DNA of 62,186 nt, filler included, from Choristocarpus tenellus KU-1152 (lineage: Eukaryota > Protista > Phaeophyceae), in NCBI GenBank assembly GCA_964200185.2. It is 11 parts of 11 records of this genome, joined end to end, with 100 filler letters (N's around TTAATTAATTAA, not from the genome) between each part and the next. Parts side by side here need not be neighbours in the genome. Positions count along the whole stretch, not along the records: positions 25,057 to 31,288 come from CAXNAD020008615.1; 10 more parts are not named here. One strand, given 5' to 3'. The translations under genes were made by a program, and so were the position numbers. The notes under the pieces were generated by a model, which worked only from the letters and a program-made list of their open reading frames with translations, did not search any database and had not been told where the DNA came from. Below, one piece after another: positions 24,611-31,288 of this stretch. How positions within the stretch are numbered: the first letter of the stretch is position 1; each line of letters starts with the position of its first letter.

Positions 24611-25579
24611 CTATACCATTAAGCAACAAGGGCCAACATAATTGATCACAACAAACACAAGACAGGCAGGAGGTGGGGTAGGGGGGAGATCAAGCGACTG
24701 TAGAGAGGTGAAGGTTGAAACACAATGAAACACTTTTAAGTACTATAGTGCCCCTCATAACCCACACAAAAGAATAAGGTGAGAATTCATGGCAGGATAA
24801 GGGGAAGGAGGTTTCAAAGACGATTGTTTCTAACTAAAGCACAGTTAAGTTAAAGTGGAATTTGATATGGGGTGTATATATACACAAAATGAACGGCAGG
24901 CAATCCAAGCCTGCATATTTACCAACAATTCATGGGTCAAAGTATCTGCGGGGGGGNNNNNNNNNNNNNNNNNNNNNNNNNNNNNNNNNNNNNNNNNNNN
25001 TTAATTAATTAANNNNNNNNNNNNNNNNNNNNNNNNNNNNNNNNNNNNNNNNNNNNTCTGGTTTGTGGGACACTCATCCTTATTTAACAGTACCCCCCCC
25101 CCTTGCCATCTCCAGGGTGGCCTTGTTCGTTGCTCCTGAAGACGGGAAGTTTCTGACTGGTCTTTCTCTTCTTTTATCTCCTTCTCGAGGTACTCAGCGC
25201 GAGTATCCAATCTCTTCTCCTTTTTGTGTCACACCTTCTTGGCAGGAGTATATATGGGTGACAGACAAAAACATATTGTGTTCCCCCTTAGCTACCTCCG
25301 CCCTTCTGGAAATGCTGACGGCGAAAGTCTGTTGCCCGAGTACTGGCTGATCGAACTGCTAGTTACTTCTGCACCTGAACCGGTGATTGCAATGGAGGAG
25401 AACGCAAATAACAGCGAGAGTACCAATGGAAGACGAGAGTGAGTACACTAATAAAGTGGAACCTACTCTGAGGCAAATTGAACGAGATGTACCCTCAGGT
25501 TATGGCTGTTTTGCATTCTAAGTCTGTTTTTCAATCTTTTGCAATTCACCCATATTTCTATGGATGAATTTCCAAGTTT

Positions 25580-25775
25580 GACTTGAGAGCGTTTATTTCT
25601 CTATTGTTTGAAACTTTCCAACAATTCAGAAAATACTCTATACTGATCTCTCTATTGTTTGTGACTTTTCGACACAATCCACAAAATATCCTACATGCAT
25701 ATGAAAAAAGTTGAATTTGGCACATATTTGTCATCCTTAAAATTCAACTCTGGATACCTCTCGTTTACTCTGATG
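25580..25775. repeat. Dispersed repeat (related pieces at ~20995-21200 and ~31905-32065)
   Basis: Shared ttctct.ttgtttgaaact..ca..aattcagaaaa and caactctgg.tacctctcgtttact. Confidence 0.55.
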
Positions 25776-26549
25776 ACTCTCTACACAAAATCGACATACA
25801 AGGGATATACAACAGTATTGCTGCGAGTATCCCCATGCGTAACCTCAAGGTCTTTCCCTCGTTAAAGGGAGGCGCTGAAGTCAAGGTCTAGGCTGCAGAC
25901 TATTGATGTGACCCGGTAGACACAGTAAGGCAGCCTGCACCCTTGCACAGCCTCATGGTCGTAGAGTGAGACCCTGAAGTCATGATCTCCAGTGTAGACC
26001 ATTGATGTGGCCATGCGTGAACGCCCTCACACATGTTCACAATATCTGTTCCTCACTGAGGATGTTCATCTGAGCCGCAGATGCCACGATGCAGACCCTT
26101 CCCCCCAATTCGAGAGAAGTGGAGGATGAGATGGGTTCAGGAAATCCCAAGGAGTCCACAAAACCATACAGGGTTAATCCAGGACGTTCCAGGGAGCCAA
26201 CAAAGGTCCCACATGGTGAGCTGGGTATTTTCTCCAGTATGAAGAGATGAGGAAGGACCTCCATGTTACAAATGTTCCCAGCCACTTACCTTGATAGGAT
26301 ATGTAGCTTCAATTCACAAGCCTGTAGGCTGATGATGAGGCCCGTAGACTGCGCCGTAACAAAAATAATGTCAAATATGCTGGAACTCTTGCTTTGATTA
26401 TTAAAGTTCTGATTTGATTGAGGTATAAAAAACAAGTGAGATATTAGCATTGAGTGTTCTCACAATCGTAAAAATTAAAAGTCAAAAAGCGCAACATAAA
26501 ATATCTAGGACTTAAAGCTCATAGTGGCGTTTATGAAAACCACCATTAA

Positions 26550-27990
26550 AACCCATCGCCTGTAACACAAAATTCGAAGTATTTCGCATATTGGTCCGTG
26601 GCAAATGGCTTGGACTCTTCCAAAACTGTTGTTGAACGGTTCCACTCACCCAATGACTGCCGTATATCCATAGAGACCAAATGACGACTTGAGCGACAAT
26701 ATTTTGAAGTACATTTTGCACTAGGTACTTGCGTATGACTTGGACGGATCTCAAACTGATGTCTGACGAGATCAACTCCCCCATATCCATACGATACCAA
26801 AGGTCACTTGAGCAGCAACATATTGAAGTATTTGTGATAAGAGTCAGTTGCACACGGCTTGGATAGATCCAAAACTGATGTCTCACCGCTTCACCCACAT
26901 ATTAACTGCCCCACGAGATAGCAATGGTGACTTCAGCGGCAACATTTTGAAGTCCATGATTTATCAAGTGCCAGTTACACACTGCTTGGATGGATGCAAC
27001 CATTATTTGGCCGTTTCTCCACTCATTATCTGCCCAATACCCACAATGTATCAATGACAACTCGGACGGCATGATGGTGGTTATACTTGTACAGTAGATA
27101 GAGATAACGGCGTTTGTACTAATAATAACACTGGTGAATCAGTTAATGTTTCTCGCAACAATGATAACAGTTGGAGTATTGATACTAGTAATACAGAAAA
27201 CATAAATGTATTTGGAAGTAATTACCCTAGCAATGATAGAGATGGTAAAGATACTAGTGGCGGATATAGTGGTAATTCGGGAGGTGGTTTTGAATATGAA
27301 AGTAGTAAATATGGATTAGATAACTTAAAAGAACTACCGAGAATAGCTACTGAAAAAGAGTTCGCTGCAACTTGCCATGGAAGCATAGCTGTAAATTCAA
27401 TTATAGACCACGCTATTACTAGAAACTCTCAAGGATATGGACCTGATGCTCTTGCTAATATAAAAACATTTAATTTAAGTCATAATTACTTGGGAGATGA
27501 AGAAAAAAAAAATTAAACAAAGGTTTGTATGGATATACACTAAACTTACAAGTTTTTAATTTTTGTAATAATAAAATGGGAGCGGTAGGACTAGATCATT
27601 TAATAAAAGGTTCTATAGGTATAGACCACCTACAAAAAGGTGGGAATGATATACATAACATAATGCAAGGAATATTGACTTTACCAACAACTAGTATTGT
27701 TTGCTTAAATTTAGCAAATAATAACATGGGTTTGAAGCGTTTCGCACAAGTGTCAGTTACATATTTCTTGGATGGTTTCTCGACAGGCTCACCCAAACAG
27801 TAACTACCCAATATCCAGAAGACATTAACAGTGACTTGGGCGGCAACATTTCAATGTATCTCGCGTAAGTGTCAGTTGCACATTGCTGAGACGACTATTT
27901 GATCGTTTCTCACTCGCCCAAGAACTGTCCAATTTCGTTTAGGTACCAATGTTGACTTGAGCAGCAACTTCTTAAAGTTGTTTTTGTATT
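26550..27990 (-). repeat. Degenerate ~120-bp tandem repeat with Cys-rich coding signature, interrupted at 27071-27730
   Basis: Landmark gactt(g/c)(a/g)gc(g/a)gcaaca..ttgaag at 26686, 26805, 26929, 27059, 27833 and 27954. Minus-strand pieces read SKPCATD, KKYVTDTCAKRFK and KCCRPSHC. Confidence 0.65.
27071..27730 (+). pseudogene. AT-rich intronless leucine-rich-repeat protein fragment of probable foreign origin
   Basis: Open frame from 27073: DGGYTCTVDRDNGVCTNNNTGE...LANIKTFNLSHNYLGDEE. After one frameshift in an A-run: LNLQVFNFCNNKMGAVGLDHL...IVCLNLANNNMG. Three RI-like LRR cores; codons end overwhelmingly in A/T. Confidence 0.75.
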
Positions 27991-27999
27991 ATTCAGAGG

Positions 28000-29520
28000 T
28001 GCACATTGGATTGATGGCTGGTAGATTACCCGGAATGGTAGAACTTTCTCCATGATGAACAGTGCGACTTCCAGCCCCAACGCTCCACATTGTATGTGCC
28101 CTCCAAGAGGTCAATCGGAAAATACATGTACCTCTATTCATGTGTGTATCAACCTACGTAAGGCATACGACTGTTTTGATCACGACCTCCTGAGAGCTGT
28201 TCTTACCGGATTTAGAGTGCCTAAGGAGATTATTTCAGTCATCTGCCAAATCGCATATTTGAAAGTGAGTGCAAAAAATAGTTTGAGATTGGACAGGGCC
28301 TTCCACAAGGGCGTGTTTTTATACTTCCATCCTCTTCAACATCTTCTTCACACCACGGTGCTAAGTTTAGTGGTTAGAGAGTTCACCGCTTACTCGGTCA
28401 TCTCCCAGGTAGCGACAACAAATATCTAGACCAGAGGTGGAGGAGCAACTGGAGGTGAAATAACAATTTTGTGAGTCTTGTAGGGTATGCTTTGTGCCGA
28501 TGATGAGGGCATTGTCTCAAAGACCCAAAGAGGTTTGGCCAGGATGATGACGATGACTATGAATGCGGTCAAGTAATTCAGTCTGACTGTGTCAGAGCTA
28601 AACACAAAAAATACGTCTTCGGTCTGCTAATAGTCATGCAGATCCTGCCACTGTACCAGAACTACAAACAGATCGATAAGTTTGTTTATCTCGGAGGAAA
28701 GATCGACGGAGCTGATATCACCGCTGAGATCAGTCAGATGATCCAGAAAGTTTGGAGTCGTGTTCCATATGTGCAGCCAAGTGCCTATGACATGAGGCTC
28801 AAAGTATCTGAGGGGGTGGCGGCTGTCCATTTAGGGCCAATTTTTTCATCTTGCGATTTTTGGGTGATTTGGTTGCATAAGTCGGATGGATAATGTAAAT
28901 GCACTTTTCCTGATTTTGAACAAAATGGCACCCTGGCGCAGACCCTCCCCCCCCCCCACAGATACTTTGGTTCATGACCTCATGAGTATCTCTCAAGGTT
29001 CAGATTTCAAATGCTCAAAGTTGAAGTGCCCGAGGTTCTGTTACATGGTTGTATGGCATAGACACTCCAACAGGTCCAATAGATGAAGCTTCACTCCAAT
29101 CAACACAAATTCCTTCTATGCTGCATCACATATTACAAACAAGAACATACTGATCATGCACTGTCCTGCAAAGATACCTTTGTGAAGACTGGTTGTGAGA
29201 GTGTCAAGGTGACTGCGCAAATGGAAACTCCTATTCGCTAGGCCAGTTGCACTTTGGGGATTCGTGACTCCCAACGTGTTGATGTGTGGGGAGCTTGCAA
29301 CTGGAAAACAAAAGCATTGTAGAAAGGACAAGAACTGGTGGATATGCTTACAAGACGATCTTGAGATTTGGAGCTACAGGTGAGGGATGGGGCATAAGGA
29401 ACAAAGAAGACCGATCAACATACGTGGTACGAGTGTGTGGATGCCAGCACAACGAGCTTCATGGCAAGGAAGGTGGGATCCCAAAGAAGCCAGAATACTT
29501 GATGTACGCCGTGCTAAAGC
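28000..29520 (+). mobile_element. RTE-clade LINE reverse transcriptase relic
   Basis: INLRKAYDCFDHDLL, GLPQG, LFNIFF, MLCADDEGIVS, DKFVYLGGKI, LMCGELATG..WWICLQDDL; multiple frameshifts. Confidence 0.85.
28796..28973. mobile_element. MITE family A nested in the RTE relic, TSD ATGA
   Basis: atga|GGCTCAAAGTATCTG...CAGATACTTTGGTTC|atga. Confidence 0.88.
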
Positions 29521-29980
29521 AACACCTAAGGTAGCCCAAGCAACCAACACAACCACCACCAACATTACCACTGTCCTGTGAACGGTGCTTTCTCATCTGT
29601 ATACCGATTTTATGTCGCCAGTGACGTTTTTCGGTTTCATTGAACCTCGTATGATATATTTTTTGTGGTTGTTGGTGCTTTCATCTTTGGTTCTTTTCTC
29701 TTCTTGCTTTCTTCTAGAAGTCCTTTTGTCCTCTTCATTTCTTGTATATTTCTGTCATTGGTTATATTTCTCAGTATGTATTGCCTTGTTCGGGAAACCT
29801 TTTCAACCAAAGGTGTGGGACTCTTCAGATTAAGGTGAATATAAATATTAATACATCCGTGCCATAAGTCTGTGCTGCGTTGTTCATAACTTTTGAAGAT
29901 GATGAAATTAATTTCTGAAGAAGATTTGGAATCCTTGAAGAATTTCTGGTTAGGGTCAGCTCTTTTTATTAACATTATTA

Positions 29981-31288
29981 CTCCCCATCCATCACAATTT
30001 TATTAGCCACAGAAAAACACTACATGTCTACCTTTGGCGTGTTTTCATGCTCACCAGACAACTGCCTCTTCCTTACCCCTGTGTGCTCTCCACACTGAAG
30101 TCATTACCCCTTTGTATCTAAGTACTTGATTATACACCACAAAAAGGAGTTGCCAAGCCCTCTCTAGTGTGGTTTCATCATACTCCTCATACTGTTTCTT
30201 AATGGCCTTCACCATCTCCTCAACGGACCCAAACCGATCCCCAATCACTCGGCATTTCAAAGACCTGAAGAAGCACAGGTCCTTGATATTGAGGTCGGGG
30301 GAGTTAGATGACCGCGTCACAAGCCTAGTCGACCACTCCTCAGTCTTCCCTGCCCCTGACAAGATTTCCGAGTTGCCCTTGCCCGTGTGGGGGGTGGCAT
30401 CGTCTTGCTGAACGACAACGTGCTTCCCCTGCAACCAAGGTATCTTGGTCTTGATTGCAGGCAAGTAACTCCTCCATGTACCACTTGCTGTACCAAAAAT
30501 GGTCCAAAGTACAGTCCTGCCCATACACATCCCCCTTTGTATGGTTCTTGCTTGTCCTGTCTGCCGTTTTTGGCGCACACACACGCCAAATACCAAGCTT
30601 TCCATCAAAGCTGTGAGCCGAATCTGGGCGGGCGTTGACTGCAATGACCATGGTTTTGGGGACATGACTCTTGTGCTGCACAGTAGGGGACCCTGGAAGG
30701 TCACTATCATCCTCATGCAGAAATACCCTAACCCTTTCCGCATCAGCCATCACGTAAAACCAGGTTTCATCCACATGGATTGTGCTCGCCATGGAGGCGT
30801 ATACACCACTTTTCCAGTCCACTTGATCGCAAACAAAGTCGATTCTCCATACCTTATGCCACGATCTAAGCTTGGATATGCAGCGGCGATTCGGCATGGC
30901 CCCCATATTATCCAATCACCTGCTTATGGTGCTCGTGCTATAATTCAGTCCCTTAGCAGTCGTCTTCATTGTGACCTGACGCAATGTGAATGACCGACTA
31001 TCGAAGTTGATACTATGTATTGCGGCCATCTTGGTCAATGTGAGCTCTGAAGGCCGCCCACTATGTGCCGCCACCCCTAGGTCAAGCGTGTGGCCACGGC
31101 CGAGCTGATCGGCAACGTCCTCCCAGAGCCCTCGCACGTAACGCTCAGACACTCCAAACTCCGCCACGAGGGCTGGTCCAACGTATCACGGCAGCTTATG
31201 CTCACCAGGGACCATTCTGTTAGCCTGCCGCACTGCAAGCGCAACCTTAGTGTTCAGGGACACTTGGGCACCCTTCCTACACGGGGGT
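29981..31288 (-). mobile_element. Plant-mariner (DD39D-group) transposon, frameshifted transposase, 5' end cut by the contig edge
   Basis: IHVDETWFY, KTMVIAVNARP, FDGKLGIW, VQQDDATPH and NSPDLNIKDLCFFRSLK motifs. The terminus ta|CTCCCCATCCATCACAATT at 29981 resembles the Stowaway/plant-mariner TIR. Confidence 0.9.

Follow-up and report, generated by a model that had tools for sequence, protein, structure and literature searches.

Wolbachia insertions in the nuclear genomes of arthropods and nematodes, like the nuclear insertions of organelle DNA (NUMTs and NUPTs), are captured by end joining at breaks, with little or no microhomology and with small deletions. Such insertions are functionless, and they keep the composition of their donor while they are young. 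Phage WO of Wolbachia carries eukaryote-like cargo genes, which have been termed its 'eukaryotic association module'. In the nucleus of Volvox carteri, a 9-kb rickettsial block has been interpreted as the trace of a past endosymbiont (PMC4324946). Nuclear integration of DNA from intracellular Rickettsiales is already established, and the locus presented here is a new and cleanly bounded case of it that introduces no new principle.

The window, that is, the whole stretch of DNA that was analysed, comprises 62,186 nucleotides of Choristocarpus tenellus KU-1152 (Phaeophyceae; GCA_964200185.2). The locus lies in the piece at positions 25057–31288 (CAXNAD020008615.1), which consists of repeat-rich DNA of ~45% GC. 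Positions 27071–27730 hold a block that we interpret, with a probability of roughly 85%, as a dead nuclear integrant of bacterial DNA, namely an internal 660-bp fragment of an RI-like LRR gene. The features of the locus are listed below with their coordinates in the window.

26544–27070, no strand assigned: left part of a host tandem repeat with units of 119–130 bp, ending in the 5′ part of the interrupted unit (...gacggc); direct-repeat families D1–D4, unit alignment, and summed depth of 54–146 in run X1 against 21.6 for unique sequence.
27071–27730, + strand: probable inserted internal fragment of a bacterial (Rickettsiaceae-type) LRR gene; blastn to loci L023, L002 and L001, phmmer against protein P0001 (E = 8e-67), GC 0.318.
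27073–27510, + strand: piece 1 of the broken frame, 146 codons, with an N/G/S-rich N-terminal module, the region of an ATCHGS motif and the first LRR; translation, 87% identity to residues 19–164 of protein P0014 and 79% to P0001.
27503–27512, + strand: A10 run, the site of the frame break, one letter shorter here than in all aligned bacterial relatives; alignments.
27516–27730, + strand: piece 2 of the broken frame, ~71 codons, with the second and third LRRs, stopping mid-gene at the right junction; translation, 93% identity to residues 170–240 of the L001 protein and 89% to P0014.
27460–27495, 27546–27581 and 27696–27731, + strand: three LRR motifs; translation.
27731–28062, no strand assigned: right part of the host tandem repeat, which restarts with tttgaag, the rest of the interrupted unit; repeat search, unit alignment, and summed depth of 38–50 in X1, above the unique level.

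As in Volvox, Rickettsiaceae-type DNA lies in the nucleus of a eukaryote and can be read as the trace of a past endosymbiont (PMC4324946). The Volvox block is ~9 kb long and contains four genes, whereas 660 bp of a single gene are present here, and the relatives of the donor are in this case marine, coming from a Tara scaffold and a seawater run (PMC4324946 for Volvox). Compared with the Wolbachia insertions, the donor is of the Rickettsiaceae type, and one short fragment is present in the 6.2 kb available.

A preliminary description of this DNA had singled out the block as AT-rich, with A/T-ending codons and an open frame of ~147 codons broken only once, and measurement bears this out. Its GC content is 31.8% (0.318), against 0.440 in the left part of the repeat, 0.422 in the right part and 0.455 in the rest of the piece, and 83% of its codons end in A or T. 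The frame starting at 27064 is open for 147 codons and meets a TAA directly past the A10 run, while a second frame carries on from 27516 up to the right junction; translation and alignments both place the single frameshift in the A-run, and neither host run (X1, X2) differs there in length. Shuffling the insert 2000 times gave longest open stretches of 48 codons on average, with none above 120. There are 0 stops in the 217 codons of the insert, in which 4.6% of single changes would create one. As had also been stated, the insert has neither a start nor a stop of its own, and the ORF list shows only the last third of piece 1 because the first in-frame ATG, GTG or TTG comes near the end of that piece.

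When piece 1 was searched with phmmer against 1.84 billion representative proteins, only 10 hits were returned at E ≤ 0.001. The best of them, P0001 (418 aa), shares 79% identity over query residues 1–144 (E = 8e-67), and the sole clearly different protein among the hits is a generic ROCO-type LRR protein (E = 3e-5). No closer eukaryotic gene was found by HMMER search among the 1.84 billion proteins. A scan of 185,579 bacterial and archaeal genomes, one per species, yielded one locus only, L001 (contig 10 of the MAG with the title 'Rickettsiaceae bacterium isolate SGMAG-38'), where a 429-aa ORF holds the 3′ two thirds of the block. A word search recovered 24 further members of the family. The closest member, P0014 (442 aa), is 87% identical to piece 1 and 89% identical to piece 2, and its gene lies on L023, a scaffold that its record name identifies as a Tara metagenome. 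Scans of JGI metagenomes gave nothing with piece 1 and only generic LRRs of 28–38% identity with the family alignment. Four loci align with the block at the nucleotide level.

L023, 3005–3665, with window 27071–27730: 86.7% identity (blastn, single one-letter gap at the A-run).
L002, 1464–2124, with window 27071–27730: 81.2% identity (blastn, single one-letter gap at the A-run).
L001, 8644–9050, with window 27325–27730, the 3′ 406 bases: 89.7% identity (blastn, single one-letter gap at the A-run).
L005, with window 27361–27731: 82.6% identity (nucleotide alignment).

Both alignments that extend to the left end begin at 27071, and the right-hand limit of all four is 27730 or 27731. In proteins of 418–442 residues, the block covers residues 19 to ~238. 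The best hits are bacterial (the MAG labelled as Rickettsiaceae, the Tara scaffold, and L005, a 160-kb contig with housekeeping genes) and not eukaryotic, in keeping with the transfer from endosymbiont to nucleus that had been proposed at first. Judged by identity, the direct donor would be an unsampled lineage, since its closest sampled relative is 87–90% identical.

In a maximum-likelihood tree, for which the broken frame was read through with an X at the break, the Choristocarpus sequence groups with P0001, the L001 protein and P0012 in a 100/100 clade of bacterial proteins. Relationships within this clade are poorly resolved because its members differ in the mosaic make-up of the N-terminal module. 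A module of ~70 residues at the N-terminus (DGGYTC...CTNN...NDNSWSIDT) is common to P0003, P0004, P0009 and P0028–P0032, which are longer proteins with differing middles. The family shuffles its modules, and its tree is blurred as a result.

A relative of the insert was also detected in run X3, a seawater metagenome, in which two 151-nt records match the insert only. One covers 27376–27512 with 17 differences and the other 27554–27699 with 10. At 9 of the 12 listed differing places the X3 letter is that of at least one bacterial relative, and the X3 read that passes the A-run has the bacterial form. These matches indicate that relatives of the donor live in the sea.

The block had been said to encode three RI-like LRRs. 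This holds for the family, as far as can be judged from its full-length members: in Pfam searches P0001 scores 23.8 for LRR_6 (cut-off 23.4), the L001 protein 24.1 for LRR_1 (cut-off 20.6) and P0009 38.9 for LRR_6, which also reaches the cut-off. The fragments in the window are too short for significance, and Pfam found nothing significant in them (LRR_1, E = 0.18) or in the flanking ORFs; an Rfam search gave no match. The AlphaFold model of P0001 is confident only at residues 110–280 (pLDDT 70–87), where it predicts alternating strands and helices. Against solved structures, the best Foldseek matches of the model are the LRRs of NLRP1 (TM 0.61 normalised to the target, rmsd 2.9, 171 columns), NOD2 and ribonuclease inhibitor, with Legionella LegL1 lower down. 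The modelled LRR part superposes on these RI-like (Pfam LRR_6) proteins and also matches LegL1, whereas identity to the solved LRRs is only 14–23%, and the family adds an N-terminal beta module with Cys that is particular to it, as well as a C-terminal domain that matches nothing in Pfam. Only a fragment with three repeats is present in the window.

The genes that surround the relatives bear on the nature of the donor. The order RecT, LRR gene, DUF805 is found in L002 and L023. RecT is the immediate upstream neighbour of the LRR gene in L002, L007, L009 and L023, and DUF805 lies downstream in L002, L023, L001 and L005. In L001 a resolvase is found upstream and DUF805 downstream; at a greater distance lie genes for a terminase large subunit, a ParB-methyltransferase and a helicase. 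A module of small ORFs, RecT, the LRR gene and DUF805 recurs at L023:1990–4657, L002:454–3099, L009:1945–4695 and L007:766–2279. Together with the neighbours in L001, this recurrence suggests that the LRR gene is prophage-borne cargo encoding a eukaryote-like protein in these bacteria. The L001 contig could itself be a phage contig binned with the MAG, given its terminase, ParB-methyltransferase and helicase genes; since it is prophage-like, a phage of such a bacterium is a possible vehicle for the fragment.

These arrangements are the grounds for a first alternative, in which the DNA came not from a Rickettsiaceae chromosome but from a phage or prophage of the bacterium, or from another AT-rich intracellular bacterium misbinned as Rickettsiaceae. 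The RecT genes upstream of four of the LRR genes and the phage-type genes of the L001 contig speak for it. The 160-kb contig L005 speaks against it, as here the LRR gene lies near gyrB, rpoD and dnaG, with two DUF805 genes flanking it on one side and xseB, yceG and an NDUFS4-like gene on the opposite side; so does L010, where the gene adjoins nuoG, pyrH and frr. Queried with the family alignment and with each of the two pieces, IMG/VR returned no close relative, only generic LRRs of 30–50% identity. On this balance we regard such a donor as rather unlikely, and it would still mean bacterium-associated DNA in the host nucleus. The placement of the donor in Rickettsiaceae is tentative: it follows the title and binning of one depositor's MAG, and the other relatives are unlabelled contigs. 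All loci with GC measured lie at 32–34%, like the insert, and the relatives occur in compactly organised bacterial DNA. At L005:10001–11001 the LRR gene is split into two overlapping ORFs of 128 and 213 aa, and is either decaying there as well or disrupted by a misassembly close to the same AAT-rich codons.

LRRs of the RI-like kind are a typical eukaryotic feature, and giant viruses commonly have AT-rich, N-rich coding sequences. Both facts, and the circumstance that the direct donor is unsampled, could be taken in favour of an indirect route, by way of another eukaryote or a giant virus into which the bacterial gene had passed beforehand. However, every relative above 40% identity whose contig was read sits among bacterial genes, the viral contigs of the three scans hold no close match, and the codon usage and GC content of the insert equal those of the bacterial genes. 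We consider this route very unlikely. An origin in a giant virus as such was dropped when the three IMG/VR scans gave no close match.

The host sequence that received the fragment is a degenerate tandem repeat at 26544–28062 with units that are 60–84% alike. Its units are too diverged for Tandem Repeats Finder, which missed it; it was revealed by a direct-repeat search and a MAFFT alignment of the units. In the caatg...gacttgagcggcaacattttgaag register the units measure 119, 124, 130, 114 (insert removed) and 121 bp. Unit alignment confirms that taking out the insert restores a repeat unit, of 114 bp against 119–130 bp for the others. Without the block the interrupted unit reads ...gacggc(a) followed by tttgaag, and it is ~4 bases short of the consensus exactly there.

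At the left junction, host sequence ending in ...gacggc is followed by ATGATGG..., and the A at 27071 can be assigned to either partner. At the right junction, bacterial homology ends with ...AACATgGG at 27730, and host tttgaag follows. Microhomology amounts to at most 1 base on the left and 0 on the right. The preliminary description had placed a CATG at both junctions. The left one (27070–27073) does straddle its junction, but the right one (27725–27728) lies inside the bacterial homology, 2–5 bases from its end, and its G is specific to the window, all bacterial relatives compared having an A at that place. No target duplication was found at the junctions (flanks gacggc and tttgaag), and no terminal inverted repeats at the ends of the block. 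Insertion as a transposable element was rejected on these two grounds and because the block is an internal gene fragment.

A junction with no duplication and no terminal repeats, and with ~4 bases missing, fits the capture of a stray DNA fragment by end joining, a pattern known for organelle and Wolbachia insertions. Of the capture by NHEJ or microhomology that had been suggested, the end-joining part is retained, while at ≤1 base the microhomology part is not. The homology and boundaries of the block, the contigs that bridge it, its single-copy depth and the bacterial setting of its relatives are observations, whereas the route taken, the way the break was repaired, a recent date and an infection of the host are inferences. 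The donor DNA would have come from a bacterium living inside the host cell, or from its prophage, and would have been captured during end-joining repair of a double-strand break within one host repeat unit. Some 4 host bases would have been lost at capture, with essentially no microhomology involved, and one letter of the A-run would have been lost after insertion.

Physical joining of the block to host DNA was assessed in two host runs, X1 and X2, which are different samples of one study and possibly the assembly's own data. In X1, one contig of 3235 nt spans 25600–28822 with 0 differences at a mean depth of 21.6, other unique contigs having 17.5–24.5; in X2, a contig of 1081 nt spans 27024–28104 with 0 differences at a depth of 6.09, against 5.7–8.2 in its neighbours. 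The bridging evidence consists of short-read contigs, and these Logan depths are per-contig means and not local values, which makes them coarse. None of the X1 and X2 contigs ends at 27071 or 27730. At this level of detail the block is joined at both junctions without a step in coverage, so that the refuting outcome of unspanned junctions or a coverage step, named beforehand, did not occur. In the bins of the flanking repeat, depth is 2–6 times the unique value, and in the bins of the insert it is at the unique level, so paralogous copies of the repeat exist without the block. The insert being single-copy and the flanking repeat multi-copy, the block is not common to all copies of the repeat, which had likewise been named as a refuting outcome. 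In run X4, from a related organism, no reads covered the locus, and no empty site was observed. In X1, the bin 27476–27609 has a summed depth of 27.2, against 21.6 in the other insert bins. This excess comes from a short extra contig, at least 85% alike, over the most conserved LRR part, which could be a second nuclear fragment or the gene of a live bacterium in the sample.

A further alternative takes the block for an artefact, in which host DNA became joined to DNA of contaminating bacteria in a chimeric molecule or during assembly, for instance by ligation at CATG. The occurrence of CATG near both ends and the origin of both supporting runs in one study could be cited for it. Yet contigs from two runs and different samples pass both junctions with 0 differences at host depth and no break at either, the right CATG lies 2–5 bases inside the homology and so is not the joint, the insert sits exactly where ~4 bases of the repeat unit are missing, and the block has a frameshift and window-specific changes of its own, which a resident copy would be expected to show. 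We regard an artefact as highly improbable.

The flanks are multi-copy repeats by their depth in X1. They include an ORF at 30051–30743 that, by language-model features only, resembles eukaryotic DDE_3/mariner transposases and for which Pfam gave nothing. The putative transposon remnants and the repeat depth suggest that the flanks are nuclear.

The age of the integrant was approached through the changes on its own branch, with L023 as sister and L002 as outgroup. On this branch 37 changes are synonymous and 27 non-synonymous; under neutrality 79% should be non-synonymous, and neutrality is rejected (P = 2e-10). It follows that most of the distance arose in a bacterial lineage not yet sampled; most of the 10–19% that separates the insert from the sampled bacterial genes would have built up under purifying selection. 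Neutral decay since insertion appears to be ~3% or less in a crude two-part mixture. The chance of finding 0 stops in 217 codons is P = 0.39 at 3% decay and 0.12 at 7%, and a small decay fits the lack of stops, the single indel and a GC content that has not drifted toward that of the host. The window branch and the L023 branch do not differ significantly (Fisher P = 0.19). That the insertion is recent, as had been proposed, is plausible, not proven.

Most likely the fragment is now functionless. The least probable of the readings considered is that the host uses it as an exon or small LRR peptide kept by selection, for which the 0 stops in 217 codons and the non-synonymous share below neutral might be quoted, but an in-frame start comes only among the last few codons of piece 1, the frame is broken by a frameshift and has no stop of its own, the fragment lies in a tandem repeat among transposon remnants, no RNA run contains it, and the low non-synonymous share is explained by its evolution in bacteria before the transfer.

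A dead integrant of bacterial DNA at this locus suggests that a bacterium of this type once lived inside the cells of the lineage, and would imply that the bacterium infected the host lineage. A precisely bounded piece of DNA from a bacterium of obligate intracellular type in a eukaryotic chromosome is direct evidence of that bacterium's access to the heritable nuclei of the lineage, and its value is that of a physical record of such access by a marine Rickettsiaceae-type bacterium. The insert can also serve as a marker with which populations and sister species could be screened to date the infection. The donor gene, moreover, belongs to an undescribed LRR gene family, of which 24 members were found at 90% clustering and 10 representatives in the search of 1.84 billion proteins. 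Found in marine AT-rich contigs that resemble those of intracellular bacteria, and often beside phage-type genes, this family is a candidate host-interaction factor.

The position of a eukaryote-like repeat gene beside phage-type genes (RecT, resolvase, terminase) in a putative obligate intracellular alphaproteobacterium recalls the eukaryotic association module of phage WO. Unlike the WO cargo, the LRR gene lies among housekeeping genes in L005 and L010. As a tentative extension, more doubtful than probable, the Choristocarpus lineage may carry, or have recently carried, an undescribed heritable marine symbiont of the Rickettsiaceae type, the fragment being one of many integrations and the donor gene part of a phage-associated RecT-LRR-DUF805 module that delivers eukaryote-like LRR proteins, as a counterpart of the phage WO cargo.

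Further elements were observed in the same piece. Broken ORFs of a Tc1/mariner-type transposase (DDE_3 / Transposase_1; language-model features, score 0.92; no Pfam hit) lie at 30051–31167 on the - strand. At 28052–28900 on the + strand, a decayed stretch resembling reverse transcriptase, with non-LTR-like motifs, was recognised by eye, without Pfam confirmation. A short element at 28682–28949, which ends in a C-run, has many variants and reaches a summed depth of ~812,000 in X1 against ~22 for unique sequence; it may be a SINE-like or satellite repeat.
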